From Macrostomum lignano (lineage: Eukaryota), in assembly GCA_002269645.1 (NCBI GenBank), contig NIVC01003635.1, positions 1 to 64,000 on the forward strand: a DNA stretch of 64,000 nt, given 5' to 3'. A program made the position numbers and the translations under genes. A model generated the notes under the pieces. It searched no databases. It was given only the letters and a program-made list of their open reading frames with translations, and was not told where the DNA came from. Shown in pieces: positions 5,625 through 50,000 of this stretch; position 1 is the stretch's first letter; every line of letters starts with the position of its first letter.

Positions 5625-5695
<71 letters not shown>

Positions 5696-5738
5696 CACAG
5701 ACAGACACACAGACAGACAGACAGACAGACAGACACTA

Positions 5739-5799
<61 letters not shown>

Positions 5800-26016: not shown

Positions 26017-26039
26017 TGTGAGACCAGCTGGGCTTACTC

Positions 26040-26570
26040 TCAGGGATCTCACACACCTGAGAAAGATCCTCTCAGGTATCTCACACTTGGATATATCCTT
26101 TCAGGGATCTCACACCTGAGATAGATCCTATCAGGGATCTCACACACCTGAGATAGATCTTCTCAGGGATCTCACACACCTGAGATAGATCTTCTCGGGG
26201 ATCTCACACCTGAGATTGATCCTCTCAAGATGATCTCACACCTGAGATAGATCCTCTCAGGGATCTCACACCTGTGATAGATCCTCTCAGTGATCTCACA
26301 CACCTGAGATAGATCTTCTCGGGGATCTCACACCTGAGATTGATCCTCTCAAGATGATCTCACACCTGAGATAGATCCTCTCAGGGATCTCACACCTGTG
26401 ATAGATCCTCTCAGTGATCTCACACACCTGAGATAGATCTTCTCAGGGATCTCACACACCTGAGATAGATCTTCTCGGGATCGCACACCTGAGATTGATC
26501 CTCTCAATATGATCTCACACCTGAGATAGATCCTCTCAAGCGGATCTCACACCTGAGATAGATCCATTCA
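26040..26570. repeat. ~30-bp minisatellite family B, copy in duplication unit 1
   Basis: GATCTCACACCTGAGATAGATCCTCTCAGG with length variants. Confidence 0.92.
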
Positions 26571-27346
26571 CCTACTCTGGACCTCTCATCCAAGATAAAT
26601 ATTTTCAGAATCTCACGCTTCGAAGGCCATTGTAAGAGATGAACTCATTTAGAATAGCCGTAACATCTTGGAATCTGACGCTCATATGGCGTCATTTAAT
26701 TCCATTTAGCAGCGTGAGATGGGGGTGGGGTGGCCAGACCTGCAAATGGCGCCACCTTTTTGGTAGACAATGCGCAGTTTTTAGTGCTTGCCGTTGATTT
26801 ACTAAATAAGAGGACGAGCTAAATAAATAAGATAATTTTCGCGTCTTACTTCAGCAAAAAATCATGCAATGAGCAGTCGATTATGATTCTGTTAACTAGC
26901 TACTATAGATGTGAACAGGAAATCTTGGACAAAGTTTAGTATTTTAAAAACTCAAGAAGATAGAGACGTAGCTCATAATTGAGGCTTCATACATTTATTG
27001 GTACCGAGAAAACATACTTGAATACTCTGGTTGTGCACGAGATTTGAACTAGCTTAACGAGATTCAATAGCTATTTGTGTTTTTTTCTTTCAAATATCAG
27101 AAAAAGCAAGAGCCTCGCTGATAATAATATTAACAAACAAAATTACTTGAAAAATTGAAAATCTAACTGTTAGAAATCAAAAAAGTATTGTGAAAACAAT
27201 TTGTTAGAGTAATATTTTTTTTCAAATCTTTGGCAAATCTTTAACGATAAATTGATGAAAGCAGATTTTGAATAAAATTGTTGATACTATGCAATAAAAA
27301 AGGTAAAAACTTAAAAGTCTTCTTTTATAATATTTTAGCTTTTAAA

Positions 27347-28252
27347 TCAAGAAGTACTGAAGTAGTTTAGTTCAGTTGTCCATACTACAACTGTGGGCTC
27401 TTCCTCATCAGCTGAGCACCTGCAGCAACAGGCACAAAAACAGCAGATAGCGACGAAAGCTAAGCCGCCTCCACCTCCGGCGCCAATAATGACAATAATC
27501 GAGGTTCCCCCACCACTCTTCTTAGCAGTGCGACTTTCCAGTTCATTGCCAGACTTCAGAACCAGCAGCTCTGGCATTGTTGGCGTGGTTGGAACTTCAG
27601 CTGCCGCAGTTGGCTTGGCTGGAACTTCAACTGCCGTAGTTGACTTGGCTGGAACTTCAGCTGCCGCAGTTGGCTTGGCTGGAACTTCAACTGCCGCAGT
27701 TGACTTGGCTGGAACTTCAACTGCCGAAGTTGGCTTGGCTGGAACTTCAACTGCCGCAGTTGACTTGGCTGGAACTTCAACTGCCGCAGTTGGCTTGGCT
27801 GGAACTTCAGCTGCCGCAGTTGACTTGGCTGGAACTTCAGCTGCCGCAGTTGGTTTGGCTGGAACTTCAACTGCCGTAGTTGACTTGGCTGGAACTTCAG
27901 CTGCCGCAGTTGGTTTGGCTGGAACTTCAACTGCCGTAGTTGACTTGGCTGGAACTTCAACTGCCGCAGTTGACTTGGCTGGAACTTCAACTGCCGCAGT
28001 TGGTTTGGCTGGAACTTCAGCTGCCGAAGTTGGCTTGGCTGGAACTTCAACTGCCGCAGTTGGCTTGGCTGGAACTTCAACTGCCGCAGTTGACTTGGCT
28101 GGAACTTCAACTGCCGCAGTTGACTTGGCTGGAACTTCAACTGCCGCAGTTGACTTGGCTGGAACTTCAACTGCCGCAGTTGGCTTGGCTGGAACTTCAG
28201 CTGCCAGAAGCAGCAGTAAGGCAATTGGCAAAAGGCACTGTCTAGCAATCAT
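27347..28252 (-). CDS. Unknown type-I membrane protein, paralog 1: signal peptide, 21 x 10-aa repeat, TM, Cys-rich tail (~301 aa)
   Basis: ATG at 28252. MIARQCLLPIALLLLLA is signal-like. The stalk is (A/T/S)A(V/A)EVPAK(P/S)T x21, followed by SIIVIIGAGGGGGLAFVAICCFCACCCRC. A TATA box lies ~120 nt upstream. A further 3' exon cannot be excluded. Confidence 0.7.
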   Translation of the reverse strand: MIARQCLLPIALLLLLAAEVPAKPTAAVEVPAKSTAAVEVPAKSTAAVEVPAKSTAAVEVPAKPTAAVEVPAKPTSAAEVPAKPTAAVEVPAKSTAAVEVPAKSTTAVEVPAKPTAAAEVPAKSTTAVEVPAKPTAAAEVPAKSTAAAEVPAKPTAAVEVPAKSTAAVEVPAKPTSAVEVPAKSTAAVEVPAKPTAAAEVPAKSTTAVEVPAKPTAAAEVPTTPTMPELLVLKSGNELESRTAKKSGGGTSIIVIIGAGGGGGLAFVAICCFCACCCRCSADEEEPTVVVWTTELNYFSTS

Positions 28253-28371
28253 CTTCAAGGGTTTAGTCTAGTTGGCTATTATAACAATAGCAAGCAACAA
28301 TTACTGTGGTGGACGACTGTTTCCGAGCGTTTAAAAACTTCGGTTAGCATATTTCGTCAGATGCATATAGA

Positions 28372-28404
28372 CTTATATAGAAATTTAGTAACAAGGTACT
28401 TCTT
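28372..28404 (-). promoter_or_regulatory. TATA box block of paralog 1 (also 30005-30035 and 38827-38851)
   Basis: Minus strand reads CCTTGTT(A/G)CTAAATTTCTATATAAG. It is conserved ~120-125 nt upstream of all three ATGs. Confidence 0.7.
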
Positions 28405-28717
28405 GAGAAAAAAACTGAATTTTTGAGCCAACTCTTGCCTAAGTAGAGTAAAGTATCCTACGAGCTAAGTAGAAAAACGTGTGATGTTTTTTGCTCGCAA
28501 CTTCTTTTAATTCTCGTGTCAGAGATAAAATTAAACCAATTAATACGACTCGAATCCTGGATTTCAAGGCCGACTTATAGTAAACACGAAATGCGCTCAA
28601 TTGCATTCGTCTCTTGACCGAATATGTTGTCTAGCAAGCGATGCCTAAAATACATCTAAATACGATTCCTTCATTTCTAATCTATGAAATCTCGTTAATG
28701 AATAAGAATCTCACAAA

Positions 28718-29030
28718 CCTGAGTTGGATCCTCTCAAGGATTTCACACCTGGGATAGATCCTCTCAAGGATTTCACACCTGGGATAGATCCTCTCAAGGA
28801 TTTCACACCTGGGATAGATCCTCTCAAGGATTTCACACCTGGCATAGATCCTCTCAAGGATTTCACACCTGGGATAGATCCTCTCAAGGATTTCACACCT
28901 GGGATAGATCCTCTCAAGGATTTCACACCTGGGATAGATCCTCTCAAGGATCTCACACCTGGGATAGATCCTCTCAAGGATCTCACACCTGAGATGGATC
29001 CTCTCAAGGATCTCACACCTGAGATGGATC
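28718..29030. repeat. 30-bp minisatellite family B, unit 2 (~10 copies)
   Basis: Unit GGATTTCACACCTGGGATAGATCCTCTCAA. Confidence 0.95.
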
Positions 29031-29490
29031 CATTCAGCTACACTGAATCTCATACCTAACGCACGTCGTAAATCTTTTCAGAATCTCGCACTTCGAACGC
29101 CAGTAAGGTGTAAAAGATGAACTCAATTAGAATAAGTCGCAACATCTGGGAGCTAGACTCGACGCCCATATGGCGTCATGTATTTCTATTTTAGCGGCGT
29201 GAGATAGGGGTGGGGTGACCAAACCTTGCACGATGGCGCCACTTTTTATCGTACGAGCTTGTAGACAATGCGCAGCTTTTAGTGCTTCACGTTGATCTAG
29301 CTCGCACATACCAAGAAGAGAAGTAAACAAGATAACTGTGAATTGAATTTTTACATTTTTGCCACTCTTTTTGCGCACGAGATTTTAACTCCTCCATGTG
29401 AAAAAATGTCTAATATCAATTTGCCTCAGTTAACATCCGGAAAAAAATTGAGAATCTCGAGTACTTATTGAACAATAGTACAAGTAATAA

Positions 29491-29880
29491 TTAAAAAATT
29501 GTCGACAAATTGAACATCGAACATCGAACGACGAACACTGTGCCGCCTCCGCCTCCGGCGCCAATAATAACAATAATTGAGGTTCCCCCACCACTCTTCA
29601 TAGCAGTGCGACTTTCCAGTTCATTGCCAGACTTCAGAACCAGCAGCTCTGGCATAGTTGGCGTGGTTGGAACATCAGCTGCCGTAGTTGAGTTGGCTGG
29701 AACTTCAACTGCCGCAGTTGGTTTGGCTGGAACTTCAACTGCCGCAGTTGACTTGGCTGGAACTTCAACTGCCGCAGTTGGCTTGGCTGGAACTTCAACT
29801 GCCGCAGTTGGCTTGGCTGGAACTTCAGCTGCCAGAAGCAGCAGTGAAGCAATTGACAAAAAGCACTGTCTAGCAATCAT
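29491..29880 (-). CDS. Paralog 2 of the repeat-stalk protein: 6 repeats, TM/tail diverged or truncated (~129 aa)
   Basis: ATG at 29880, MIARQCFLSIASLLLLA. Near-identical to paralog 1 through MPELLVLKSGNELESRTA.KSGGGTSIIVIIGAGGGGG, then diverges (TVFVVRCSMFNLSTIF*) with no Cys tail. May be a pseudogene or spliced. Confidence 0.6.
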   Translation of the reverse strand: MIARQCFLSIASLLLLAAEVPAKPTAAVEVPAKPTAAVEVPAKSTAAVEVPAKPTAAVEVPANSTTAADVPTTPTMPELLVLKSGNELESRTAMKSGGGTSIIVIIGAGGGGGTVFVVRCSMFNLSTIF

Positions 29881-30369
29881 CTTCAGGGTTTCTTTAGTCT
29901 CCAGTTTGTGATTTAACAATAGCAAACAACACAAGGTTAGGTTATAACTGACTGTTTACGAGCGGTTTAATTAAAATTCGCTAGCATTTCGGCAAAAGCA
30001 TTTACTTATATATATAGAAATTTAGTAACAAGGTACTTCGATCTTTTTTGAGAAGAAAGCTGAATTCGTGAGCCACTCTTGCCCCTCCATCTGCAAGCTC
30101 AAAGCAGCATTACCTACTTTATGTATACGTACAATTGTACGGTCACGGAAGCTTTTTGTGCAAAGCAAAGATTGAGAAATTCCAATCTCGCTACTTCTAC
30201 TCTTAGTAGTGAGTTCGCGATATTATAATCATAGATAGCTTTTTAAAGATTAGAAATTTTTTATTAAATATTCCAAGACTGGTAGACTAACTTTCAGGCT
30301 GAACAGTGGCTAATCTCATCCAGTCTCGGTCTCTCAATCTTAATTACTGACCTCAGAACATCTTTAGCA

Positions 30370-30903
30370 TGCGTCGCGGCGGCAGCAGCGTCTGAGCGGC
30401 CTTCCGTTCGATCCGAGCCGTCCTCCAGTCCGAAGCGCTGCCCGACCGCCAGAGGGCTCGGCTGTGGCAGGCGGTGGTCGAAACCGTCCTGCTATACAAC
30501 GCCGAGACGTGGACGCTGACGGCTACGCTAGAGCGGCAGCTGGACTAGGCGCACTCAGGGCTGCTCCGTGCGGCCTTTCGAGCTGACGAGAGCGTCGGGA
30601 CCGAGGCCCTGTACGATCGGGCCAAGCTGCAGCGCCCGTCCACCATCCTGCGCCGGCGGCGACCTCAACTGGCGGGCCACGCGATCCGGGCCGAGGGCTA
30701 CTGCCCCCAACCTGTTCAGGACGTCCTGCTTCTCACCTTGCAGGGCCGTTCACGCGGGGTCACGCCCGAAACCGTCGATACGTGGACTGCCTGCCGTGCG
30801 ATGCCGGGGGCGCCCGACACTGCCAACGGGGCAGACTTGGTCGCACCCTGCACTGTGATCTTGCATTCTGGGGCTGCGTATTTTGTTGTTGTTGCTGTTG
30901 TTA
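30370..30903 (+). mobile_element. 5'-truncated RTE-like LINE 3' end with (TTG)n tail and TSD
   Basis: Encodes LWQAVVETVLLYNAETWTLTATLERQLD*AHSGLLRAAF...LQLAGH. The tail is TTGTTGTTGTTGCTGTTG, and TTAGCA is duplicated at 30364-30369 and 30904-30909. Confidence 0.85.
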
Positions 30904-31714
30904 TTAGCAACACATCACTTCATCTTCACCTGGGGAGCCAACAAAGAATGGAATACAATTTTTTTGAATAAAGCGACGTCGCTTCTTCTGACCTCAGCCT
31001 AAAGTCTCTTAGCCATTCCCCGTAAGCCTTGACATCTCAGTAATTTTCCCCAAGTGCCACAGCATTATAGCAGTTCCTAAATGAATCTTTCATGTTTTAC
31101 ATAACGCTTTCTCATAACGAAGCCTGGAAGATTATTTTGAAGCTCCAAGGCAGCAACAGCTAGGTTTTTAAACTCTGCGTAGCACAGGCACACCATCTTG
31201 CTGAAGTCAAATCTGCCAAACATGCAATTCCAAAAGCATTGTGAAGGTTAGCATCCTTTTTTGTCCAAAAAGCCTTCATTTCCATATTATCTAAAACTAA
31301 TCTAAGCTTCTCACCAATGTTTTGGGCTTTAGGCTTCCACCACTGCAGTACTTCTCTCCTCAAGGGTAGCGCCGGTAGTTGCTGTCACCAGTCCCTGAGG
31401 GTCCTAGTCTTCGGTGAGGTGAGGGTCTCGTCGGAACAAAAATAAACAAGACCAGCGGGCAGATTCACGACTCCAACGACCGCAGGTTAGCAGATCCTGC
31501 AAGGCTCAGTGAGGCGACTGGGTCAGAGCAGACTCAGTTGTCTGGGTTTAGGATGAGAACTGATTCACAGAACACGGGCACTGGAATTCGAACACAATAA
31601 TATAATGGAAATCGGGATTGTGAAAAAGACTTAAATCTGCTGGAATCTGGTCCGTATTTATAGCCGGGGGAACCCCATTGGCCAAGCGAGATATGACGTG
31701 AGAAACTCACGTGG

Positions 31715-32710
31715 CGCAACCTAACACTAACCCTAAGCAAACCCTATCATAAAGCCTTAATTCATCATCTAAATCAAAGGCAAATACTCGTAATTTTGTT
31801 CTTTCTCCACAAAGCTATAGTTCAAGGGAATCCAAAAAGAAAGGGAATTCAAAACGTCCAGGAATGAGAATCCTGAGGGAATACCAATTAGTTGAGGAAA
31901 GGGAATCCTGAGGGAATACCAATTAGTTGAGGAAAGAGAATCCTGAGGGAATACCAATTAGTTGAGGAAAGAGAATCCTGAGGGAATACCAATTAGTTGA
32001 GGAAATGGAATCCAGAGGGAATACCAATTAGTTGAGGAAAGAGAATCCCGAGGGAATACCAATTAGTTGAGGAAAGAGAATCCTGAGGGAATACCAATTA
32101 GTTGAGGAAAGAGAATCCTGAGGGAATACCAATTAGTTGAGGAAAGAGAATCCTGAGGGAATACCAATTAGTTGAGGAAAGAGAATCCTGAGGGAATACC
32201 AATTAGTTGAGGAAAGAGAATCCTGAGGGAATACCAATCAGTTGAGGAAAAAGAATCCAGAGGGAATACCAATTAGTTGAGGAAATGGAATCCAGAGGGA
32301 ATACCAATTAGTTGAGGAAAGAGAATCCAGAGGGAATACCAATTAGTTGAGGAAAGAGAATCCTGAGGGAATACCAATTAGTTGAGGAAAGAGAATCCCG
32401 AGGGAATACCAATTAGTTGAGGAAAGAGAATCCCGAGGGAATACCAATTAGTTGAGGAAAGAGAATCCTGAGGGAATACCAATTAGTTGAGGAAAGAGAA
32501 TCCTGAGGGAATACCAATTAGTTGAGGAAAGAGAATCCAGAGGGAATTCCAATTAGTTGAGGAAAGAGAATCCAGAGGCAATACCAAATCCTGGCATAAA
32601 GTGAATCCCAAGGGAATTCCCAGAGGCAACAAATTTCAAGAACATCTCCAATTGTTCTCACCCGAGTCAAACGATTCTCAGCGAGCGTATTTCCGAGATA
32701 CGACTGCAAC
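31715..32710 (-). pseudogene. Relic duplicate of RAD54L2 exon 6 3' end plus intron 6
   Basis: 32657-32708 CTCACCCGAGTCAAACGATTCTCAGCGAGC.. aligns to 43819-43880 CTCACCTGAGTCAAACGACTCTCAGC..GCGAGC (AENRLTR|GTGAG vs AESRLTQ|GTGAG). The 25-bp GTTCTTTCTCCACAAAGCTATAGTT is identical at 31798 and 43695, and the ACCCTATCATAAAG block is shared. Confidence 0.75.
31865..32585. repeat. 35-bp minisatellite, ~20 copies, inside the intron relic
   Basis: Unit GAGAATCCTGAGGGAATACCAATTAGTTGAGGAAA. Confidence 0.95.
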
Positions 32711-33134
32711 CCCGTCCCGTATAACAGATGAAATCTTTTATGCCGCAGGTTAAAATATCAAGAAGAGCACCAGAAGCTTCTGCCCAACCTAAAACAAACT
32801 ACATGCTATACTACTATCAGCGAAATTTAGGTAAGTAGTAGGATACGTCTGTGCTGTCTATTTAGAGTTTCAATTAATTAAAAAATTTTTTTTAACTTAG
32901 TTAAAACAAGGTTTTTTATTTTTTATGCAGAATGATAGCGCCGACAGTCACTCCGATCTCTGATCAAGATTGAACCAAATTACTGAAGTGTTGGCAGCAG
33001 AATTAGTTAAAATGCTTTTTGGGAGCAGGATACGAGCTTAAATCGACATGGTCCTAAATTATGAAGCTCTGAAAATCGATGCTAAAACTTTGTTCTTAAC
33101 TCTTTCGTCAGTTCGCTAGCTTCCTTAGCTTAAT

Positions 33135-33615
33135 TGGATCTCACACCTGAGATGGAGTGTCAGTATCTCACACCTGAGATAGATCCTGTCAGTATCTCAC
33201 ACCTGAGATAGATCCTGTCAGTATCTCACACCTGAGATAGATCCTGTCAGTATCTCACACCTGAGATAGATCCTGTCAGTATCTCACACCTGAGATAGAT
33301 CCTGTCAGTATCTCACACCTGAGATAGATCCTGTCAGTATCTCACACCTGAGATAGATCCTGTCAGTATCTCACACCTGAGATAGCTCCTGTCAGTATCT
33401 CACACCTGAGATAGATCCTGTCAGTATCTCACACCTGAGATAGCTCCTGTCAGTATCTCACACCTGAGATAGATCCTGTCAGTATCTCACACCTGAGATA
33501 GATCCTGTCAGTATCTCACACCTGAGATAGATCCTGTCAGTATCTCACACCTGAGATAGATCCTGTCAGTATCTCACACCTGAGATAGATCCTGTCAGTA
33601 TCTCAGTATCTCACA
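33135..33615. repeat. 29-bp minisatellite family B, unit 3 (~16 copies)
   Basis: Unit CAGTATCTCACACCTGAGATAGATCCTGT. Confidence 0.95.
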
Positions 33616-33652
33616 GTTTGTACGCGAACTTTTGTAACACCTACCTTTGTAG

Positions 33653-33932
33653 TACCGGAGCAACTACCGGATCTGCTCGCTGCATTTTTCGGAAAGGTTC
33701 TTTGTAACCAACTCTCAGGACTCCAACTCCAGCCGCAAGCGCTCCTCATTTGCAGATGCAGATGGACAAGCAAAGAAGCTGAAAAATCGACGGTTGGTTA
33801 ACTTCTGATGCCGTACCCAGCATCCTTCCAAACGCGCCATCCTACTTCATCGAAACTGTTCCTGAGAAACGACCTACCACAATGACATCTGCTCAGACTC
33901 GGCGAGAGTGGCATGCGTCGCTGCGAGGATGA
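33653..33932 (+). pseudogene. THAP-domain fragment (P-element/THAP transposase-type), frameshifted
   Basis: YRSNYRICSLHFSERFF...KLKNRRL, then after a frameshift SDAVPSILPNAPSYF. These are the C-terminal C..H and AVP(S/T)I motifs of THAP. The N-terminal CxxC was not found. Confidence 0.65.
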
Positions 33933-34439
33933 GGCACAAACATTTTGAAGTCAAAACTGTCTGAGAAATGAGCTATAGCTCTGATGTATACTCGTAGTAG
34001 ACTTTGCTTTTGTTTTATAGAGTCATACAAAGTATTTTTATACAGCTTGCCCCAGCAATTTTCTGCTCTGTAGGTAAGCTAATTTCACTCTCTTTTGCTT
34101 GATTATCACCTAAGGGTAACCATTTCATTTTTTATTTCATATGTTTGCATAGCCTGAAGGGTTGTAAAGTATTTTTCTCGCACTAACAAAACGGAAGTTT
34201 TTTGAATAATACAAATTAACCTTGGAGACCTAAAGTTCTGAATGTTTTGCGTTGAATAGTGCAAACCGCATCTTTCTATGACTTTTAGTTAAAAAGTTAT
34301 CAATCATAGAAATGAAAAAACGTTGCATTTTCCTATTCATTCACTGCTTTCCAATTGGGGTTTTACCCCTAAACTTGTTATGCTGCCTAAACTAGTGTCC
34401 CTTCCTGGGGAGTGCAGCAACCATACTAGAGGCTTCTCT

Positions 34440-35749
34440 GGTTGTGTCATAAATCCGCTGACAAACATCTCTAGTTTCTTTCCTACTTCTTTTTTTGAGT
34501 TGATATTTTAGTGTAGGGCTCTAGGGCTCATGACAGTTATGTCTATAAAAAATATTTTTTGTAGCTTTAATATAAGACAGAAAATCCTGTATCTTTCATA
34601 CCACCATGGAGAAAAGTGAATTTTCAAAGCGTACTATCATTTGGTCACTGTGGAAACAACAAAAGAAGCAGTTCCGACATCTTGCGCGAAATGCAACAAA
34701 TATTCGGCGAAGATGCACCTTCCAAACAAACTGTGTCAAAGTGGGTCCAGCGCTTCGAGGCTGGCTGGGAGACTGTAGATGATGCTCCTCGCTCAGGTGC
34801 TCCACGAACGTCTACCACTGATGAAAACATCCAGCGGGTGCTGCACGCCCTGAATGATGATCGTCGCGTGGGCGTGACCCTTCGGCAACTTGAAGACTCT
34901 CTGGAGATACACATGAAGAGCATTCATTGCATCATTGCTGATCATCTCAACATGACACGAGTTGTTGCTCGATGGGTCCCCAAACTCTTGACACCGGCCC
35001 AGCTGCAGGAGAGGGTCCGTATCTGCAACCAACTTATGAATGCTTATCGAAACGAGCCGGACTTTCTTGGTCACCTATAGTGACTGGTGATGAATCATGG
35101 TTTCACACTACTACGAACCAGAGACCAAGCAGCAGAGTAGCGTATGGAAGGCACATGATGAAGCCCCACCTGTCGAGGCCAAGACTGTACAGTCTGCTGG
35201 GAAGCGCATGGCAACAGTCTTTTGGGACAGAGAAGGCATCTTGCTAATTGAATGACTACCGGAAGGAAGAACCATCAACGCTCAGTATTACTGTGAAATC
35301 ATGGAGCAGCTGCATGAAAAGATCAAGATTGAGCACCGTGGAATGATCACTAGGGGCATATTGCTGCAGCATGACAATGCCAGGCCACATACCTGCAATG
35401 CAACTCTGGACACGATCAAGAGACTAGACTTTGAGCTTCTGCCGTACCCTGCCTATTCTCCTGACCTGGCCCCCAGTGACTACTGGTTGTTTTCTAAAAT
35501 GAAAGAGCCACTTCGTGGTCACTGCTATGGAAGCCTTTCTGCTCTTGGCTCTGCGATCAACCAGTGGTTGCGAAGTGTCCCCAGAGAATTCTTCGCTCAG
35601 GGCATCAGCAAGCTGCCAGAAAGATGGCACAAATGTGTTCAGCTCCGGGGTGACTATGTTGAGAAGTGTGACATTGATTATTAAGAGTTCCTGTTTTTAC
35701 TTGTTTAATAGTTAAAATTTGTCAGCAAACTTATGAGACAACCCTCGTA
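34440..35749 (+). mobile_element. Mariner (DD34D) transposon, transposase frameshifted (34606-35684)
   Basis: Motifs: HTH SKQTVSKWVQRF, PRSGAP, RWVPKLLT, IVTGDESW, LLQHDNARPH and YSPDLAPSDYWLF, with 34 residues between the 2nd and 3rd Asp. The right TIR (35718-35749) ends CCCTCGTA. The left TIR core (34440-34465) matches at 22/26 but its outer end is disrupted. Confidence 0.93.
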
Positions 35750-36529
35750 AATTTAAAAAACCTTACTACAGAAGGTAATAAAGTATTTTATAATACCTAA
35801 TGACTGAAGAAGAGAATGCTGTCTGTTTGCGCAGGAAATTTTAACTTCGATCATTAATATAAAAATATTTTTATTCAGTAGCTTTTCGTTTTAGTTTGAG
35901 GACGTATAATCAATGTGTTAAAAATAAGTATAAAAAACAAAAACATTGTCAAAGCGAAAATTGACCTGTTGATGAGGACGCACTTTTTCCCAAATCCCGC
36001 GCTAGCACATGGGCTCTAAACTTACTTGCCTACTAACAGTGGGCAAAGGGCATTTTTATCCCTTTTCTGCGAATTTCATAGAATCTATACTAGATATAAT
36101 GTCTGGCCATACTAGTAGTCATAATAACATAGGCGCAGCTTTTTGGGTCATAAATCATCGCTTTCAAAGTTGGTCTGACAGCCACCTGCGCCTCACTCAG
36201 TGTTGAAGCGGGCGCCAGATGGTCTGAGAGGATGCGGGCGGTAGCTTTTTTCTCATCATTTTGACAGGCCATCAAGATTTATGAGGTCAGAGCCTATTGT
36301 TCGTGTTCACTCAAGCGTGTGACAGCTTTGACAGCTATGCGTTTTACCCCTAAAAGTACCTTGGGATTAGCGATTAGCAATTTCTCTTCATTATCTTCAC
36401 TTTCTATTTAATAAGAGCTTTCTAATGTATATTTTTTCATTAATTTCTGTCAATCCTACGCGAAAGGTCATAAATCATTTTGTTGCGATTTTGAGTGATT
36501 TATGGCCGCACCTGTCATCTTTTTACGAC

Positions 36530-37640
36530 CCTGTAGGAACTGATAGGATCTCTCGGTCACGTGATTCTGGGTAGCAACAAGCTTAGCCAATCAGAAAATT
36601 CGGCGCTCATTTTAACAAAGCGGCTCAGCCAATCAGAATCGACGTGTTCCATTATAACAAACTGCGGTCCAGTTGGCGGCTATTTAAACCGGAGTTTTTG
36701 GCCCGCTCGGACTCAACTTTGGCTCGGGCCCAGCGCGCAACTTCTGGTTCCCAGAGCACGACCGTCGTTTCTTGATCCCCGGATTGCGACTTCCCCCATC
36801 ATCATCAAGGACGAGTCCCCCGGTCGACAGCAGCGAACATCCAGTTAAGAGCATCACCTGCTAGCTAACAGCGAAGATTGTGACAGCATCATTCCGAGTC
36901 TACAGCTGCAGAGCATCGAGCCGATTCGGTCACTGTGGATTACCTGGTCTCCGGCTGTTGAGTTTCTGATTGGTTGGGTGAGAGGCTACCTGGACTTGCT
37001 TGATTGGGTGATCCCTTATCTGTCCCCTGTTTCAGTAGCTGGATTAGGCGCACACTTTTGCTCTTTTGTTCAGTAGTGCTGTTGCTGAGGCAGGAATCAT
37101 TCAATAATACTGCTAGTAGTCTAAGACTCCAATTCAGTCTAAAGTGTGAAGTGAACTAAGGAGAAGGTTAAATCTAACAGTTATTTTTATCGGTTTTATT
37201 TCTTTGTTCGCCGATGGCTCAGATGAGTAGCTAAGCTAGTAGGCGCCGGTCACAGTGGACCAATGGCAAGGCAGTTCTCAGTCGACCAATCTATCAAATC
37301 AGTGAGCAAAACTGCCAGAAGTGCAGAATCGGCGCCAGAGATGTACTTTGTGCACTCTAGGGTAGCCAAGCGGCTCGGGTAAATGAATCATGCGGTCTCT
37401 GAAGTTCGAGTTAGTCTATCATCAGCGCTATGAGAGGCTAGCTGGCGCGTTGAAGGCTAAAAGTACATATCTTCGTATTTAGCAATGTAATAGTACATGT
37501 AGCTACCCCATAGACTCGCCACCGCAAGAATCCCCTGCACAAGTCCCCTCTGTACCTGCATGGCCAACGCGATCTAGTCCCAGCAGTGTCCCTTATCATC
37601 GGCTATGACTTCGAGATTGACAGCAAAAAGACACTAGTTG
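36530..37640 (+). mobile_element. LTR-like promoter segment followed by a possible aspartic-protease relic
   Basis: CACGTG at 36558, AGCCAATCAG at 36585 and 36627, TATTTAAA at 36681. Downstream fragments ESAPEMYFVHSRVAKRLG* and VPLIIGYDF weakly resemble a retroviral protease. No LTR pair or TSD found. Confidence 0.35.
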
Positions 37641-38218
37641 GCAGGTAAGTGCAAAGCCCCTTCTAGTCGGAAGCCCGATTTCGAGAGTCCCGGTGTGGTG
37701 AGCCAGGGCGCACGGGCTGGTGGCAGCAAGTTAGTTGATCTGCGGATTAGCTAATTTCTACTTTCAAAATTCTCCCTGCTCGTCTCTCGCTGTCCCTCTC
37801 TTAGCTATAGGACCTAGACTGCTCGCCACACGATCAAGCTACCATGGGGCTGACCATCTGACAGGAGTGGGGGGCCAGGTCTCTAATTGATTTATTTCTG
37901 AGCCTGAGGCCCGAAGGCTTCCCTAACAAGGAGCCCGAAGGTCGAAACCCATCACTGTTAGAAATATATATTTTCCAATCTATAACATTGTTAAACAAAT
38001 TTACCAATCTAATAATTGATAAGCACAAATTTTAATTAGCATCATAAATAATAAAAAACTACCAACTACAAAAATTAACAGCCACATTTCTAGAGGGCGT
38101 CTCTATAGAGTTTTTAATCTCTGTAAGTCGCATTATCTTCTGAATAAACAAATTTAATTGTTATTATGGAATAAATATAGGCAACGATTTTCACCTTCGA
38201 GTTTTTAGTTATCAAAAA

Positions 38219-38704
38219 TCACTTGCATAGGCAGCAGTACAGTAAAATAAGGCAGGCCACAAGGACCAAAAAGCCACCGCCACCTCCGGCGACTCCAATA
38301 ATGATACTCATGCTTCCGGTAGAACTTTGAGGGCCAACGGTGCTTCTGGCATAACCATAACCGTAATTGCCGCTAGCATTGCGACTGTCCAGCTTCTTGA
38401 GCGGCCTTACAACCAGGCGACCTGCCGCAGTTGGCTTGGCTGGAACCTCAGCTGCCGCAGTTGGCTTGGCTGGAACTTCAGCTGCCGCAGTTGGCTTGGC
38501 TGGAACCTCAGCTGCCGCAGTTAGCTTGGCTGGAACCTCAGCTGCCGCAGTTGGCTTGGCTGGAACTTCAGCTGCCGCAGTTGGCTTGGCTGGAACCTCA
38601 GCTGCCGCAGTTGGCTTGGCTGGAACCTCAGCTGCCAGAAGCAGTTGAAGCAACAGCATTAGGCCGATTGGCAACCAACGATTGCGATGCTGTCTAGCGA
38701 CCAT
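38219..38704 (-). CDS. Paralog 3 of the repeat-stalk membrane protein: 7 repeats (~161 aa)
   Basis: ATG at 38704, MVARQHRNRWLPIGLMLLLQLLLA signal. AAAEVPAKPT x7, a diverged juxtamembrane segment, then MSIIIGVAGGGGGFLVLVACLILLYCCLCK*. Same TATA block upstream. Confidence 0.7.
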   Translation of the reverse strand: MVARQHRNRWLPIGLMLLLQLLLAAEVPAKPTAAAEVPAKPTAAAEVPAKPTAAAEVPAKLTAAAEVPAKPTAAAEVPAKPTAAAEVPAKPTAAGRLVVRPLKKLDSRNASGNYGYGYARSTVGPQSSTGSMSIIIGVAGGGGGFLVLVACLILLYCCLCK

Positions 38705-39165
38705 CTTCAAGGAATTCCCTAGTCTAGCTATAGCTGGTTACAACAATAGCAAGCAACAGAAGGTTCGGCTGACGCTTTCCAAGCGGTTTTATTAAAATTC
38801 ATAAAACATTTCGTTTGAAGCATCGACTTATATAGAAATTTAGCAACAAGGACGTTTTGAGAAGAATTTTTTAACCACTCTTGTCTCTTGCCTCCATCAG
38901 CAAGCCAACAACAGAATATTGTACGGTCAATTGTACAATTGTACTGTCAGGGAAGATTTTCGTGCAAAGCAAACAGAAATGCTTTGCAACCAAGTACATA
39001 CTTTGCTACTTCTTTTCAGTAGTGAGCTCGAGACATTATATTCATACTAGTTTCACAAAATTGGAAAATCCTAACATGTTTCAAGACTAGTACAGAAATG
39101 TTGAGGCTGAACAATGGCTGATCTCATTCAGTCTCAGTCTCTCAATCTCAATTACTGACTTCAGG

Positions 39166-42291: not shown

Positions 42292-44040
42292 TCAAATCGG
42301 TTTTCCAAAAGTGGAACCGAATGATGGCAGGCCGGAGTCGCCGCCGCCGATGCCCCAGTCGGCGTCAAGCGCCGACAAAGACTCCAAGATGTCGTCTGGC
42401 AGGTCCTGCTGATCAACGCCTGCTGACTGTTGCTGCTGATTGGATGAGAACTGATCGGCAGCTACGGCTGGTTGATAGTAGCCAGGCTGCATCTGAGGCT
42501 GATGGTTAATCTGAGCACCGCTTTGAGCACTCGGATAGGCTGTTGAATAATCAGCCGAGGATTGATGCTGGACATATTGCGGCTGATGAGGCGGAGGCTG
42601 CGACTGCCAGTTCATTTGCTGATGATGCTGCTGCTGATGCTGTTGCCACGGTTCCGGTTGAAACTGATGCATTGGCATCGGCTGCTGCTGATGGTAGGTT
42701 TGCTGATTGTAAGCTGGCTGATGAGGATGCTGATGATGCTGATGAGGCTGATGAGGCATCATTGGCGATGGCATTGGCGACATAAAAGACTGCTGCTGCT
42801 GCTGAGGTGTTTGGGTGCTCGGCATAGGCTGCATTGAGTAGCTTTGCTGCTGCTGCTGCTGCTGCTGCTGGGGATAAGGCTGATGTTGATGAAGCTGAAG
42901 CTGCTGATGCTGCTGAACAAACTGATGCTGAGGCGTCGGATGCTGCGCCACCAGCTGTGTTTGAGCGGGAGACCCGACAGTTGCTGGCGCCGGTGCCGCT
43001 GGCGAGACTGGTTGCTTTTTCTTGTGCGACTTTTTCTTAGCAGCAGCCCCTGCTGCCGCGGCTCCGGCGGCTGATTTTGAATTTCTTCGCTGCTGCTGCT
43101 GCGGCTGAGGCGTTGAAGGCGACGGCGCCGCCGACGGCTTGCCAGCTGTTGACGATGACGAGGACCAGCGGCCGTTGCCGCTGCTGCTGAGTGCCTGGAT
43201 TAGACAGAGGGTGGTTACACTGTAGTATGGCCTTGGATGGGACTCTTGGCTTTGGAATTCCCATGGAAAAACCGTCACTGTACTCAGTCCAATGCGCAAT
43301 GCCATTTCTGGCAAAAAAATTTTTCGGATAATCAGTAACGATATCTGTTAAAGGGATTCTAAAATCCAAGACGGAGGGAGGGTTCAAGAGGGAGCAATAG
43401 ATGCAATGGAATCGAAGGGAATGCCAAAAACGGGGTTTACAAAAATTCACTGGCGCATTTCCACTGCCAGGATCAACTGCCAAACCTAACTCTAACCCTA
43501 ACTATAAAATCTAACCTAACCCTATCCTTAACCTAAATCTAATATAACCTTAACCTAACCTTAAACTAAATCTAACCTTAACCTAAACCTAACCTTAAAC
43601 TAAATCTAACCTTAACCTAAACCTAACTTAACCCTAACCTAAACCCTATCATAAAGATTTAATTCCTAATCTAAATCGACGTCAGTCAATTTTCGTTCTT
43701 TCTCCACAAAGCTATAGTTAAATGGAATCCAAACGGATTGGGAATCCAGAGGAAATTAAACTGAATCCAAAGGGAATTCTGAAAAATGCACATCGTACTT
43801 AAAGAACAATTCCTAATACTCACCTGAGTCAAACGACTCTCAGCCTCTGGCGAGCCCATTTCGGAAATACTGCGCACAAAATTGTCAATAAAATTATCAA
43901 CAGAATCGCCGGAATTTGTTACTACCGAGGAAGGAGTAGCCGCTGTTGGAACTTGCTGAGCAGTTGCAGACAATTGAGAAGATAAGAACGTTTGAGACGG
44001 CTGAATAGGTTGAGGCTGCTGCTGCTGTTGTTGATGTTGC

Positions 44041-44077
<37 letters not shown>

Positions 44078-47000
44078 GCAGCTGTTGCTGTTGTTGCAGC
44101 TGTTGTTGTTGCAGCTGTTGCTGTTGTTGTTGCTGTTGCTGCTGCTGTTGTTGTTGTTGTTGCAGCTGCTGTTGCAGTTGTTGCTGTTTCTGCTGCTGTT
44201 GTTGTTGTGGCTGTTGCTGCTGCTGCACCGGCCGCATTGTAACACCCAACGTCGACGGCCTATTACGGCCAGCAGCTGCGGCCATCTTCGCCGCGAACTC
44301 TTCCACCCTAGCGTTAGTAGCCGCAATGGCTTGAATATCGGAGGTGGATAATTGACGGGCTGGCAAACCGGCCCCAGTTGATGCTGTTGTCGATGTTGTT
44401 GCTGTTAAAGCAGCAGCAGAAGACTGCGACAGTTGCCTAGCTGGCAGCATCTGAGCGGAAGAATTGGCTCGCATCCCAGCCTGAGTAGTGATAGCCGGAT
44501 TAACAGATTGAGCATCGGCAACAGTTGACGCAACGGCAGTGACGGCGGAATTTGTCGTGGCAGTAATACTACTACTATTAGTACTAGTAGTAGCAGTAGC
44601 AGAAGATTTCGGTCTAACAGCGTACATTTTGCCATTAGGCAATTGCATATAGGAAGCTGTACGACTTTTCAGCATAGTAACCGGGGTGCCTGCCGGAATG
44701 CGGGATTGAATAGGCTTGCCATCCATAGTGTTCACGCCAGGCGGCGGCTTGCTGCACACAGTGATATCAGTGGTGACTACAATGTGCTCAATATTGAAGC
44801 CCTGCTGTTGCATAGAACGAAGAAAGGCGGCGCGTTTCTCGTATTGCATCTGCTGCTGCTGCTGCTGTTGTTGTTGAGCAGAGCTGAGCAACCGGTGCTG
44901 ATGGAACTGCTGCTGACCCGGAGGTCCGCTGTTAATGAACCGACTCAGGTAGCTGCCACTGCCTCCGCTGCCATAGAAACCGGATTTAGTGAGCCCAGAG
45001 CTAGGAAAAGCTCTGGTGTCGATAATTGGGCCGTTGGTTGAGCCGCCGCTGGGCACATAGTGAGTAGAATAAGACTCTCGATAGGTCTGCCTACTAGACA
45101 GACCGCAGTGCATCTTGTCGCGTTCGTAAAATTCTCTGGCTTTACGCTTCTCGGCCCGGGTTAACTTAGCCTCCTGACGATCCAACAGCAGAGACTCGTG
45201 GGTGAAGGGCGCGTTAGTGAGCACCGCGCGGATACCGGATGTAGAGGAAGCTTCTTGAACGGCGGCGACTCCTGCGGCTTGGTCATCCTCGGCATCAGCG
45301 GAGCCGAGTAAAATTCGTTCGAGCATAAAGTCTGGCGACTCTTTGATAGCAGCCTGGAGAATATAGAGTTTGCATGTGGGTACATTAGCAAGCTGAAGGC
45401 ATTGAGTCTGAAATTGTATCGGTGACCCACTAAAGGACCCACACGGATAAATCAGTGACCCACTAAAGACACCACAGGGATAAATCAGTGACCCACTAAA
45501 GACACCACACGGATAAATCAGTGACCCACTATAGACACCACAGGGATAAATCAGTGACCCACTAAAGACACCACAGGGATAAATCAGTGACCCACTAAAG
45601 ACACCACAGGGATAAATCAGTGACCCACTAAAGACACCACAGGGATAAATCAGTGACCCACTAAAGACACCACACGGATAAATCAGTGACCCACTAAAGG
45701 ACCCACAGGGATAAATCAGTGACCCACTAAAGGACCCACAGGGATAAATCAGTGACCCACTAAAGGACCCACAGGGATAAATCAGTGACCCACTAAAGGA
45801 CCCACAGGGATAAATCAGTGACCCACTAAAGACACCACAGGGATAAATCAGTGACCCACTAAAGACACCACAGGGATAAATCAGTGACCCACTAAAGACA
45901 CCACACGGATAAATCAGTGACCCACTAAAGGACCCACAGGGATAAATCAGTGACCCACTAAAGGACCCACAGGGATAAATCAGTGACCCACTAAAGACAC
46001 CACAGGGATAAATCAGTGACCCACTAAAGACACGACACGGATAAATCAGTGACCCACTAAAGACACCACAGGGATAAATCAGTGACCCACTAAAGACACG
46101 ACACGAATAAATCAGTGGCCCACATGGATAAATCAGTGACCCACACGGATAAATCAGTGACCCACACGGATAAATCAGTGACCCACACGGATAAATCAGT
46201 GACCCACACGGATAAATCAGTGACCCACTAAAGACACGACACGAATAAATCAGTGGCCCACATGGATAAATCAGTGACCCACACGGATAAATCAGTGACC
46301 CACACGGATAAATCAGTGACACACACTAAAGACACCACAGGGATAAATCAGTGACCCACTAAAGACACCACAGGGATAATCAGGGACCCACTAAAGACAC
46401 CACCGAGATCCATCAGTAACCCAGTGAAGAACTCAGAGGAAAAGTCACAAAAAATACATGAAAAGAACATTACCTGAACAGCTTCTTGAGTTGGCGGCTT
46501 TAACTCAGCATCGCTAGGCCGATAGTCCATCAGCAGCATGACCTGTTGCCGGGTGAACTGACAATTCGGATTCATCTCGTCAACAATTCGATCAGCAACG
46601 CTCTGCTTGGATACTTGCCGATCGTAAATCTTTCTTTCCATAGTGTTGTCAGTGATTAGCCGGTAGATATAGCACGGCTTAACCTGGCCGTATCTATACA
46701 CTCGGCACACGGCCTGACAATCGTGACAAGGATTCCAAGAAGCGTCCATGACAACTACGCGATTAGCGCCAATCAGATTGATGCCCAAACAGCCGGCCCT
46801 GGTGCTGAGCAGGAAGAGTTTGGCTGAGCTGTCCGCTGAATTAAACGAATTAATCATCTTCTCGCGATCGCTGGCGGCTGTAGAACCGTCCAACCGAAAA
46901 TAGGACACACCTTTGCACCATTTGATACCATCCTGCGATTCTGGATCTACTGGCCAGGTGCGCAAGAACTGCTCCAATAAGTCTAGAGTGAACAGCGACT

Positions 47001-50000
47001 GACTAAACACCAATAGTTTATCGTCGCGACTAACTGATTCGTTTAATATGCGCTGGAATGCGAGTATTTTAGCTCCATTCTCTAGCAAATTTGGCTTGTA
47101 ATTCTTCATGATTTCTTCAGCCCAATCTAGCGACAACACGGCATTGTCATTGTTAGTCAGACTGCCGACATTGTTAAACAAATCGCTATTGTCGCTTTTC
47201 TGCACTGTGCTACGACGGCCGCGACTTTTCTTGGCCGGCGCAGCGGCCGAAGTTGAAGAGGTTGAAGCGACGGACTCGGCTAGCGAGGCGCCGCTCTGAA
47301 CAGGAGTCAAACCGGCGGAGTCCTTGGCGCTGCCGGTCCCATCGACATCGCAGGTGTAATCAATATCCAGATCGTCAGCAGCGGCAGCCAGATTCGATGC
47401 TTTCGCTTGCAACAAGTGATAGAGAATGTCCGGATGATTCCAGATTTTGCAACCGACAGCGAATGCTTTCAAAGGATTTGCGGCCGCCCAGCCTGACAGG
47501 CCATCGGATTGCAGACTCTGCATGAACCTGGAGTACAGGGCCTCCTGAATCGGACTCATTCTCAACAGTAGGACAAATTCAGTCTTCGGCGGCAACGATT
47601 TCTGCAGCACCGAATGCGACCGACGTTGGACGAAACCGGACAAGAGTTCGTGCAAGACGTGCGCCCTGTAGCGCATGAGTTTCCGATCGGACAGAGTGGA
47701 ATCGACACACTGACCGTTGCTAATTGGCCGCTCGAACATATTTGAGAACTGCTGTTTGGTACCAAGAAAATTTGGCCTAACAAAATCTACCATGCACCAG
47801 TACTCTAGCAGGTTGTTCTGCAGCGGATAGCCGGTCATTACCACGCGTCTTCGTGTTTTTAAATTTTTCAACGCTTTACTAATTCCGGCTGCCGAATTCT
47901 TAATCCGATGACCCTCGTCGCAGATGACCACCTGGGGTCCCGGATCTACTAGGGCTGAGCGGACCTGCTCCCAAATGGTCAGGGCTTCGTCTTCTTTGTC
48001 CACGTCAATCACAATGGGATCTGGTTCCGGTTTCGGCTGGGATTGGGATTGACTGCCGCTTTGAGTCTGCAGGCTGGCCGAGCTGCCGGATCTGCGACTC
48101 AACGAGCGAGACGAGTTGCTGCCGCCGCCGCCGCCAGTCTTGTAGCGCTTCTGCAACAGCAGGCGGAACATCTCGTAGCCTAGCAACAGGACGCCGCCAG
48201 CCTCCTGCCATTGGCTGATTACTCTGTGCCTGCAATGTTGGGCAGTGAGTGATTTATTGAGACTTTCAAGTGGGAGATAAATGCACTGATTAAATTAGTT
48301 ATTAAGTGAGTGAATGATTGGGTAAATAATTAAGTAAATGAATGAGTGAACGATCTAGTAAATGAGTGAATTATTGAGTAAATGAGTGAATGATTGAGTA
48401 AATGAGTGAATGATTGAGTGAATGGTCGAGTAAATGAGTGAATGATTGAGTAAATGAGTGAATTATTGAGTAAATGAGTGAATGATTGAGTAAATGAGTG
48501 CATGATCGAGTAAATGAGTAAATGATTGAGTAAATGAATGAGTGAGCGATCTAGTAAATGAGTGAATGATTGAGTGAATGAGTGAATGATTGAGTGAATG
48601 AGTGAATGAGTGAATGATTGAGTGAATGATTGAATGAATGAGTGAATGATTGAGTGAATGAGTGAATGATTGAGTGAATGAGTGAATGATTGAATGAGTG
48701 AATGATTGAGTGAATGAGTGAATGATTGAGTGAATGAGTGAATGAGTGAATGATTGAGTGAATGATTGAATGAATGAGTGAATGATTGAGTGAATGAGTG
48801 AATGATTGAGTGAATGAGTGAATGATTGAATGAGTGAATGATTGAGTGAATGAGTGAATGATTGAGTGAATGATTGAGTGAATGAGTGAATGATTGAGTG
48901 AATGAGTGAATGATTGAGTGAATGAGTGAATGATTGAGTGAATGAGTGAATGAGTGAATGATTGAGTGAATGATTGAGTGAATGAGTGAATGATTGAGTG
49001 AATGAGTGAATGAGTGAATGATTGAGTGAATGATTGAATGAATGAGTGAATGATTGAGTGAATGAGTGAATGATTGAGTGAATGAGTGAATGATTGAGTG
49101 AATGAGTGAATGATTGAGTGAATGAGTGAATGATTGAGTGAGTGAGTGAATGATTGAGTGAATGGTTGAGTAAATGAGTGAATGATCGAGTAAATGAGTG
49201 AATTATTAAGTAAGTGAGTGAATGGTTGAGTAAATTATTGAATAGTCGAGTAAATTATTGAATGGTCGAGTAAATGAGTGAATTATTAAGTAAGTGAGTG
49301 AATGGTCGACTAAATGAGTGAATGAATGATCAAGTGAATTAATGATTGAATGCGTGAGTGAGTGAGCGAGCGACTTACCTGGCGGTCATAGTCTTGCAGG
49401 AGTCGCTAATAACGTGCAGTGCAAATTTGCGCTTATCAGCCTCATCCGGACAGGCGGCCTCATCAACCGGCAGCCAGTGATTGAACTCCGCCACCCAATT
49501 CTGAATGGTGTTGATTGGCACAATGATAAGCACCGATTTCACGCCTACTCCGCTAAATAAAGCGTGGCAGAAGGCGCACACCTGAAATTATGCGAGAAAT
49601 AAGATCTCTTCACGTTTTTTTTAGAAAATTAAATTCAGAGAGAATTTTAATAAAGTTAAACACAGGTTGTCAAAGCTGTAAATCTCTTTGTTCAATGGGC
49701 ATGCCAGTTGTCTAATAGAGTCCGAACTCTAATCTAACAGGCTTAAAGACCTTACCTAACAGTTATAGAGCCATTATCTAACAGGCAAAAAGACCTTATC
49801 TAACAGTTACGGAGCCATTATCTAACAGGCATAAATACCTTATCTAACAGTTAGAGAGCCCTTATCCAACAGGTGTAAAGGCCTTATCCAACAGTTACAG
49901 AGTCATTATCCAACAGTTACAGAGCATTTATGTAATAGGCATAAATACCTTATGTAACAGTTAGAGAGTCCTTATCCAAAAGTTACAGAGCCCTTATCTA

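Follow-up and report, generated by a model that had tools for sequence, protein, structure and literature searches.

The 64-kb stretch of DNA analysed here (contig NIVC01003635.1, positions 1-64,000; hereafter the window) contains three paralogous open reading frames (ORFs) on the minus strand, namely g1 (27347-28252), g2 (29491-29880) and g3 (38219-38704). These had been proposed in an earlier note as a tandem family of membrane proteins with repeat stalks, and the ORF list and translations showed that all three are present. The copies have one layout in common: a hydrophobic leader (17-24 residues) is followed by an array of 30-bp units, a unique linker (24-39 residues) and a second hydrophobic segment. 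We propose with moderate confidence that the trio arose by tandem duplication and forms a lineage-restricted family whose products are small type I membrane proteins carrying a disordered stalk of repeats.

The longest and apparently intact copy, g1 (301 aa and a stop codon), opens with the hydrophobic leader MIARQCLLPIALLLLLA, a putative signal peptide at residues 1-17 (28202-28252; Kyte-Doolittle peak 1.9). Its stalk (27572-28201) consists of 21 units of 30 bp, or 10 aa, with the pattern [AV]EVPAK[PS]T[ATS]A, the final unit being degenerate; Tandem Repeats Finder (TRF) gave 20.9 copies with a 92% match. The stalk is followed by the unique linker ELLVLKSGNELESRTAKKSGGGTS (27500-27571), which is near-identical in g2, by the predicted membrane segment IIVIIGAGGGGGLAFVAICCFCACCC (27422-27499; hydropathy peak 2.26) with its glycine run and cysteine cluster, and by the short acidic tail RCSADEEEPTVVVWTTELNYFSTS (27350-27421). 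After GGGGG, g1 reads LAFVAICCFCACCCRC and then continues into the acidic tail of 22-24 residues. The divergent but intact copy g3 (161 aa and a stop codon) has a stalk of seven near-identical AEVPAKPTAA units (38423-38632; TRF: 7.2 copies, 96% match) and a predicted membrane segment IIIGVAGGGGGFLVLVACLILLYCCLC (38225-38305; hydropathy peak 2.52) that ends one residue (K) before the end of the protein; after GGGGG it reads FLVLVACLILLYCCLCK, followed by the stop. The g2 product (129 aa and a stop codon) comprises a leader, six units and a g1-type linker, then IIVIIGAGGGGGTVFVV and an arginine; after GGGGG it reads TVFVVRCSMFNLSTIF, followed by the stop.

The repeat counts given earlier (21, 6 and 7) proved correct, the last unit being degenerate in g1 and g2, with the form A(E/D)VPTTPTMP. 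The motif claimed for the membrane segment was likewise found, as IIGAGGGGG in g1 and g2 and IIGVAGGGGG in g3. The cysteine-rich tails are present as CCFCACCCRC in g1 and YCCLCK in g3, and g2 has no cysteine cluster. The variation in copy number claimed for the ectodomains was seen as a difference between the paralogs only.

Exactly three copies of a 23-nt block with TATATAA, CCTTGTTRCTAAATTTCTATATA, are present in the window, one upstream of each ORF, and shuffled sequences are expected to contain none. The block is located on the minus strand at 28374-28396 for g1, 30011-30033 for g2 and 38829-38851 for g3, which places the TATA at -127, -136 and -130 from the respective ATG. The start-codon context GAAGATG is also conserved in g1, g2 and g3. 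The promoter itself was considered as the selected element and rejected, as the identity of the upstream regions (77-84%) is similar to that of the coding parts (74-82%).

Further conserved features were observed in the upstream region. A pyrimidine-rich block, TGTTGCTTGCTATTGTT, lies just upstream of each ATG on the minus strand (28253-28290, 29881-29925 and 38705-38750), with an AG 6-15 nt after the block and 15-35 nt before the ATG. This arrangement could be a cis- or trans-splice acceptor rather than a plain 5' untranslated region. A short upstream ATG (CGAAATG) is likewise conserved, about 30 nt past the TATA.

Tandem duplication of the three copies

Nucleotide homology common to the three copies runs from the upstream region through the leader, array and linker to the glycine run and is then lost; upstream it extends to about -190 for g1 and about -490 for g2 and g3. 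All copies have the same orientation and lie within 11.5 kb. Each is accompanied downstream by a related minisatellite: the 'B' array of g1 at 26037-26565 (period 32 bp, no strand assigned), that of g2 at 28727-29031 (period 30 bp) and that of g3 at 33138-33605 (period 29 bp). The units of these arrays are about 83% alike, and the period has drifted between copies of one array family. The flank of the first two arrays was duplicated too, 26565-26835 matching 29037-29335. The B minisatellites mark the unit of the tandem duplication and do not belong to the genes. The shared orientation, the downstream B array of each copy and the duplicated flank indicate tandem segmental duplication and not transposition. 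Thus, the view of the three copies as tandem paralogs sharing a TATA-containing upstream block was upheld.

It is very unlikely that the minisatellite is borne by a mobile element with an internal array and was copied by transposition. Such an origin would be in line with the dispersal of other minisatellites in the window, for example a 28-bp family at 6.2-6.9, 15.3-15.9 and 52.3-52.9 kb, and with the transposon remains nearby (a mariner at 34.6-35.7 kb and reverse-transcriptase fragments). However, there are only three copies, in one orientation within 11.5 kb, and the boundaries of the duplication take in the B minisatellite. Terminal inverted repeats flanking the units were not found, and the Pfam search detected no transposon domain in the three ORFs. 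When the non-repeat parts were compared with the window by tBLASTn, only the g1, g2 and g3 loci were returned; no further copies of the flank or of the promoter block occur in the window, and the 30-mer is unrelated to the unit of every other array there. The transposon-borne minisatellite that the earlier note had set against its own proposal is therefore not supported.

The synonymous divergence (dS) of g1 and g2 is about 0.10, as for recent duplicates, and g3 is older (dS about 0.5-0.6). The nucleotide homology of g2 with g1 ends at GGGGG, with no similarity beyond it. An alignment across the presumed g2 deletion (about 290 nt) gave a score of 22 against a shuffle maximum of 20, which is marginal. 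Thus, g2 is a probable 3'-deleted derivative of a g1-like copy; the deletion would have taken the distal part of the membrane segment together with the cysteine cluster, and the stop codon together with the 3' region next to it.

The predicted protein and its stalk

The N-terminus has a positive n-region (R4) and a hydrophobic core with Kyte-Doolittle values of 1.7-1.9 and ends in LAA followed by EV; on hydropathy it is a putative signal peptide. Modeling of g3 using AlphaFold2 gave helices at residues 3-26 and 143-160. The predicted local distance difference test score (pLDDT) was mostly below 50 over residues 32-96 or so, i.e., the repeat stalk, and about 46-57 through the linker. The terminal helices and the low pLDDT of the stalk and linker suggest that there is no folded ectodomain, as had been claimed; the hydropathy peaks, too, are found at the two termini only.

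The C-terminal hydrophobic span comprises 26 residues in g1 (Kyte-Doolittle 2.26) and 27 residues in g3 (2.52). The g2 stretch is only 17 residues long and is followed by an arginine. The transmembrane segment claimed for all three proteins is therefore supported for g1 and g3, where the span reaches about 20 residues or more, and g2 falls short of this length. The architecture envisaged earlier, that is, a hydrophobic leader, a repeat-only disordered ectodomain, a glycine-rich membrane segment and a terminal cysteine cluster, was recovered in g1 and g3.

Five consecutive glycines are located in the outer half of the g1 and g3 membrane segments, and the cysteine cluster lies at the inner end. 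Runs of small residues favour helix-helix packing. All four cysteines of g3 match cysteine positions of g1, at +7, +13, +14 and +16 after GGGGG (hypergeometric p = 0.019). Despite this register, the DNA alignment of g1 and g3 downstream of GGGGG does not score above shuffles. Juxtamembrane cysteine clusters are typical S-acylation sites, and the cluster is likely to be one here, judging from its residues and position.

The genes could also be real with a different fate of the C-terminus: the C-terminal segment of g3, and of g2, would be a glycosylphosphatidylinositol (GPI) attachment signal or would be lost in some other way. A repeat peptide that is either GPI-anchored or secreted would then be the mature form, and g1 alone would be truly transmembrane. 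The end of g3 one residue past the hydrophobic segment and the small residues before this segment (SSTGS in g3, GGG in g1 and g2) are compatible with such processing, and GPI anchoring of repeat-rich surface coats is common elsewhere among organisms. Nevertheless, a hydrophobic stretch of 27 residues in g3 is long for a GPI signal, and the conservation of cysteine positions between g3 and the tailed g1 is unexpected in a peptide that is cleaved off. We consider this explanation improbable.

The stalk had been described as made only of proline, threonine, serine and alanine. This is incorrect, as glutamate, valine and lysine together make up 30-36% of it. Alanine accounts for 27-40% of the stalk residues, proline for 16-19%, valine for 10-17%, glutamate for about 8-10% and lysine for about 7-10%, and the sum of proline, glutamate, valine and lysine is 49-52%. 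The proportion of serine and threonine is 18.1% in the g1 stalk, 18.3% in that of g2 and 10.0% in that of g3 (16.9%, 17.8% and 9.9% of the whole proteins). Each repeat unit contains one threonine preceded by proline or serine, and there are one to three serine or threonine residues per unit, which may carry O-glycans. The confinement of tandem repeats to one domain of the coding sequence (21, 6 and 7 in-frame 30-bp units) is a feature of mucins and of the proline/threonine/serine (PTS) class. The Pfam family Mucin (PF01456) matched g2 only, with 14.7 bits against a gathering threshold of 34.7, and did not match g1 or g3. By composition, the stalk is nearer to PEVK-like or Ala/Pro-rich extended spacers than to a classical mucin domain.

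The units of g3 are uniform (AEVPAKPTAA), whereas those of g1 and g2 include variants of the types P>S, A>T and A>S, which nearly double the content of hydroxy amino acids (serine and threonine rise from 10% in g3 to 18%). It has been reported that mucin-like function was gained repeatedly by repeat expansion in proline-rich secreted proteins (Pajic et al. 2022, PMC9417175). The gain of serine and threonine in the g1 and g2 arrays is a hint, and only a hint, of the 'mucinization' route described there.

In order to find relatives of the three proteins, several databases were searched, and none was found in Pfam, in word-indexed protein clusters, in an exhaustive HMMER search or in the Protein Data Bank (PDB), in agreement with the earlier view that the proteins belong to no recognised family. 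The Pfam scan of the three proteins (E up to 1) gave sub-threshold, composition-driven matches only. Repeat-collapsed g1, used as the query in a word-indexed search of 5.8 billion protein clusters, gave 229 candidates, none of them significant; not even a self-hit was obtained, which indicates that the proteins of the host genome are absent from that collection. The exhaustive HMMER search with a profile of the three paralogs against 1.84 billion representatives gave 133 matches, with their best-matching stretches mostly within the repeats of the profile. No relative was found among the 14 matches inspected, four of which run past about profile position 100; these were unrelated repeat proteins, some of them bacterial-looking proteins with acidic repeats and a transmembrane segment. 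PDB sequence searches gave no match, a full-text literature search for the peptide strings found nothing, and two scans of metagenome contigs (with the DNA unit and with degenerate peptide patterns) and one of viral contigs gave pattern matches and no relative.

Note that one database protein, P0141, is a secreted-looking protein of 132 aa with a signal peptide and an EVPVEPIATV decamer and without a membrane segment. Its likeness is limited to the repeat, where it shares E-V-P-x-x-P-x-A with AEVPAKPTAA, and on this sequence comparison it is probably convergent.

The sampling of the databases bears on these results. The window contains, on the minus strand at 42292-53303 (42.3-53.3 kb), a gene for an ARIP4/RAD54L2-type SNF2 helicase with poly-Gln tracts and minisatellite-packed introns. 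The best database matches of the helicase core are just 48-66% identical and are scattered over flatworms, cnidarians, chordates and arthropods, and the less conserved C-terminal region has no database match. As judged from these identities, the protein collections seem to contain no close relatives of the host animal, whose lineage would be poorly sampled. Because the lineage is poorly represented, the lack of homologues is weak evidence on the age or spread of the family.

Coding potential and competing explanations

A unit of 30 bp keeps frames open trivially, and therefore the other arrays of the window with a period divisible by three were used as the control. In each of the three copies, the family frame contains an ATG located 16-23 codons 5' of the array, and on the 3' side it stays open for another 54-77 codons. 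Most frames at the control arrays close within 0-20 codons of the array, and the clearest exceptions adjoin genuine exons. Shuffling of the non-repeat parts left them open in no more than 1-1.6% of trials. Of the six frames, the sense frame alone is free of internal stops in all three copies. The unique parts of g1 and g3 are about 23% diverged in nucleotides, yet the whole frame is kept in both. Segments between homologous anchors differ in length by 21 and 42 nt, both multiples of three, and the upstream gaps are mostly of 1, 2, 4 or 7 nt, i.e., mostly not multiples of three. In a simulation of neutral substitution at 23% divergence, the ORF survived open in only 16-18% of runs. Combined by hand, the chance of an open ORF with a preserved frame under neutrality is roughly 0.01. 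In addition, the comparison of g1 with g2 over 46 codons (the last degenerate unit, the linker and the start of the membrane segment) gave four synonymous and two non-synonymous changes, with an omega of 0.18, although such counts are too small for significance.

A number of observations weigh against genes of the proposed kind. An antisense frame is open on the plus strand across g1 (27393-28271, 292 aa) and g2 (29510-29911, 133 aa) and encodes repeats of the GLAGTSTAAV type; it is interrupted in g3. Overall, g1 and g2 differ by five synonymous and five non-synonymous changes, too few for significance. The ratio of non-synonymous to synonymous divergence (dN/dS) for g1 and g3 is 0.76 overall and 0.83 in the C-terminal part, which nearly reaches the value of 1 that the earlier note had regarded as telling against its proposal. 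The unique coding parts are 74-82% identical, no better than the flanking non-coding DNA (77-79%). The dN/dS of 0.76-0.83 and a coding identity no higher than that of the flanks mean that the amino-acid sequence is barely constrained. Constraint appears to act only on the frame, the hydrophobicity, the glycine run and the cysteines, a limitation that is common for low-complexity surface proteins. Tandem arrays make up 26% of the bases of the window (TRF; 48 merged arrays, 27 of at least 150 bp, periods mostly 13-35 bp), and a minisatellite alone is no sign of a gene in such DNA. The canonical AATAAA nearest to the g1 stop is as distant as +348, and the databases searched gave no transcript, protein or orthologue support. 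The g2 copy looks truncated and is probably decaying. The charges flanking the g1 membrane segment (KK outside, one R and then DEEE inside) do not follow the positive-inside pattern. Finally, the description of the stalk as a typical mucin stalk was overstated, as its 10-18% serine and threonine remain below the criterion for new mucins, a richness in threonine and serine (TS) of more than 20% of the peptide (PMC9417175).

These observations raise the question of whether the loci are genes at all. They might be a segmentally duplicated non-coding minisatellite with its flanks, in which the frames, the 'leader' and the 'membrane segment' arose fortuitously. The abundance of arrays in the window, the several frames that a 30-bp unit leaves open (the antisense one over all of g1 and g2), the dN/dS of about 0.8, the coding identity, the failure of the protein searches to find a homologue and the survival of the ORF by neutral drift alone in about one simulation in six would all fit. 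Yet non-coding DNA does not readily account for the three frames that extend from an ATG in conserved context far past the array, unlike most controls, or for length differences that are in frame. Nor does it account for cysteine positions conserved where the DNA has diverged, hydrophobic segments exactly at both ends, a TATA block conserved at a fixed distance from the ATG, and the low combined chance estimate. We therefore regard the non-coding explanation as rather unlikely, albeit a serious one, and consider that g1 and g3 are probably real protein-coding genes.

On the preferred reading, that of a membrane protein family, each copy would be a coding unit free of introns and preceded by a conserved promoter block that contains the TATA. 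Its product would be a short type I single-pass membrane protein with a cleavable leader. The ectodomain would be an extended, intrinsically disordered stalk composed solely of AEVPAKPTAA-type decamers, followed by a short linker and by a membrane segment that opens with IIG..GGGGG and closes in the cysteine cluster. Once acylated, this cluster would hold the helix end at the inner leaflet, with a minimal or absent cytoplasmic tail. The length of the stalk (21, 6 or 7 units) would be set by slippage or unequal exchange in the in-frame 30-bp minisatellite. The role would most likely be that of a passive surface spacer or coat component and not that of a receptor with a folded binding domain. 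The intact members would be g1 and g3, and g2 would be a recent g1-like duplicate, probably in decay. What the sequence shows is the anatomy of the copies, their paralogy and the lack of relatives in the databases searched; transcription, cleavage of the leader, topology, glycosylation, acylation and role are inferred. The glycocalyx or gamete-recognition role, the O-glycosylation and palmitoylation, and the polymorphism of the variable number of tandem repeats (VNTR) in populations that the earlier note had suggested are likewise inference.

A more speculative variant of the family, which we hold to be doubtful, is that of a young, possibly de novo gene built around the minisatellite. An in-frame array of 30-bp units, with flanks that encode hydrophobic residues, would have gained a TATA promoter and would now be becoming a surface coat protein. 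The near-neutral unique parts, the selection only on frame, hydrophobicity and cysteines, and the ongoing gain of serine and threonine in the newer arrays would fit such an origin. If it is true, the five-glycine membrane segment with the cysteine cluster would be a minimal anchor of a previously undescribed type.

If expressed, the membrane protein family would contribute a lineage-specific component to the cell-surface coat in an animal lineage that is poorly sampled. It would also illustrate in compact form how an in-frame minisatellite determines how long a surface stalk is and how such an array changes from one tandem paralog to another. The uniform units of g3 beside the Ser/Thr-enriched variants of g1 and g2 match the repeat-expansion idea of PMC9417175. 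This would be an ordinary kind of lineage-specific surface protein, and existing concepts are not challenged. The practical value lies mainly in annotation: short intronless ORFs dominated by repeats usually fall victim to repeat masking and escape the gene finders.

Other elements of the window

The DNA of the window is eukaryotic, and specifically animal. Many of its tandem arrays are located within the introns of the helicase gene described above. Just downstream of the last large ORF piece of this gene, a degenerate interstitial telomere-like tract (43475-43648) contains mixed units of the TTAGG and TTAGGG types. On the minus strand, a piece of a gene of the FIT (fat storage-inducing transmembrane) family was found at 4994-6235, and a DUF4605 (FAM241-like) gene at 8855-9388. 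The FIT ORF runs through an (AGAC)n microsatellite at 5627-5800, which is read as SVCL repeats and is probably intronic. The dispersed 28-bp minisatellite family has the unit GGCCCAGCAACTGACACTCTGGGAGGCT and occupies positions 6188-6863, 15325-15861 and 52297-52927.

Mobile elements are represented by several remains. Between g2 and g3, the plus strand carries a relic of a Mos1-type mariner transposase (34616-35715) with HTH_48/HTH_32 and DDE_3 matches, broken into at least three reading-frame pieces. At 58400-61700, the plus strand carries a retroelement pol region with reverse transcriptase and integrase matches. Its G+C content (about 62%) shows a striking jump from that of the adjoining DNA at 54-58 kb (about 30%). 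A second reverse-transcriptase fragment, of about 54% G+C, was observed at 24.5-26.0 kb. Rfam and tRNA scans of the window found nothing.

Comparison with known systems

Membrane-tethered mucin-like glycoproteins include vertebrate PSGL-1 (SELPLG), CD43, endomucin, podoplanin and the glycophorins. They have a signal peptide, which is putative in the trio, and resemble the predicted products of the trio in that the ectodomain is dominated by a proline-containing repeat and has no folded part, the membrane is spanned once and the tail is short. In PSGL-1, moreover, the repeats are 10 residues long and vary in number, and one exon holds the coding region. There is, however, no sequence similarity between the trio and this group, and serine and threonine make up 10-18% of the stalks here against more than 20-40% in true mucin domains. 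The trio also lacks sulfotyrosine or lectin-ligand features, and the glycine run in its membrane segment and its dense cysteine cluster are not known from that group.

Extended spacers rich in Pro/Glu/Val/Lys or Ala/Pro are known from the PEVK region of titin, the EP repeats of trypanosome procyclin and bacterial TonB-type proteins. The stalk of the trio, which is predicted to be disordered and extended, resembles these in composition only; the two differ in unit length, in ancestry and in their place in the cell, and the searches gave no match.

Schistosoma SmPoMuc and Trypanosoma cruzi TcMUC, which form fast-evolving, lineage-restricted surface coats, are also encoded by tandem gene families; their products have a signal peptide, putative in the trio, and a variable number of short repeats. 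These proteins are GPI-anchored or secreted and Thr-rich, which distinguishes them from the trio, and each SmPoMuc repeat is a separate exon; the Pfam Mucin match of the trio remained sub-threshold and was limited to g2.

Residues 130-161 of g3 matched positions 36-67 of the 98-position profile of the Orthoreovirus p10 FAST protein (PF07204) with E = 0.068 and 13.6 bits against a cut-off of 21.4. Both proteins have a glycine-containing membrane segment followed by juxtamembrane cysteines, which are palmitoylated in p10. Homology with p10 was rejected: the sub-threshold match is compositional, a p10 ectodomain is absent, g1 and g2 gave no match, and no relative was found among viral contigs.

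Lineage-specific 'orphan' mucins arise when proline-rich secreted proteins gain exonic repeats and threonine and serine, and form a functional and not an evolutionary class (PMC9417175). Their in-frame exonic repeats with copy-number change are found in the trio as well, and their signal peptide has a putative counterpart there. The trio differs from them in falling below the 20% TS of that study, in being apparently membrane-anchored and not secreted, and in belonging to an unrelated animal lineage. Thus, homologous membership in any of these groups is not supported, and by analogy the closest functional counterparts of the trio would be PSGL-1 and similar mucin-like proteins that are tethered to the membrane and carry VNTR decamers, together with the lineage-specific mucins born from repeats.

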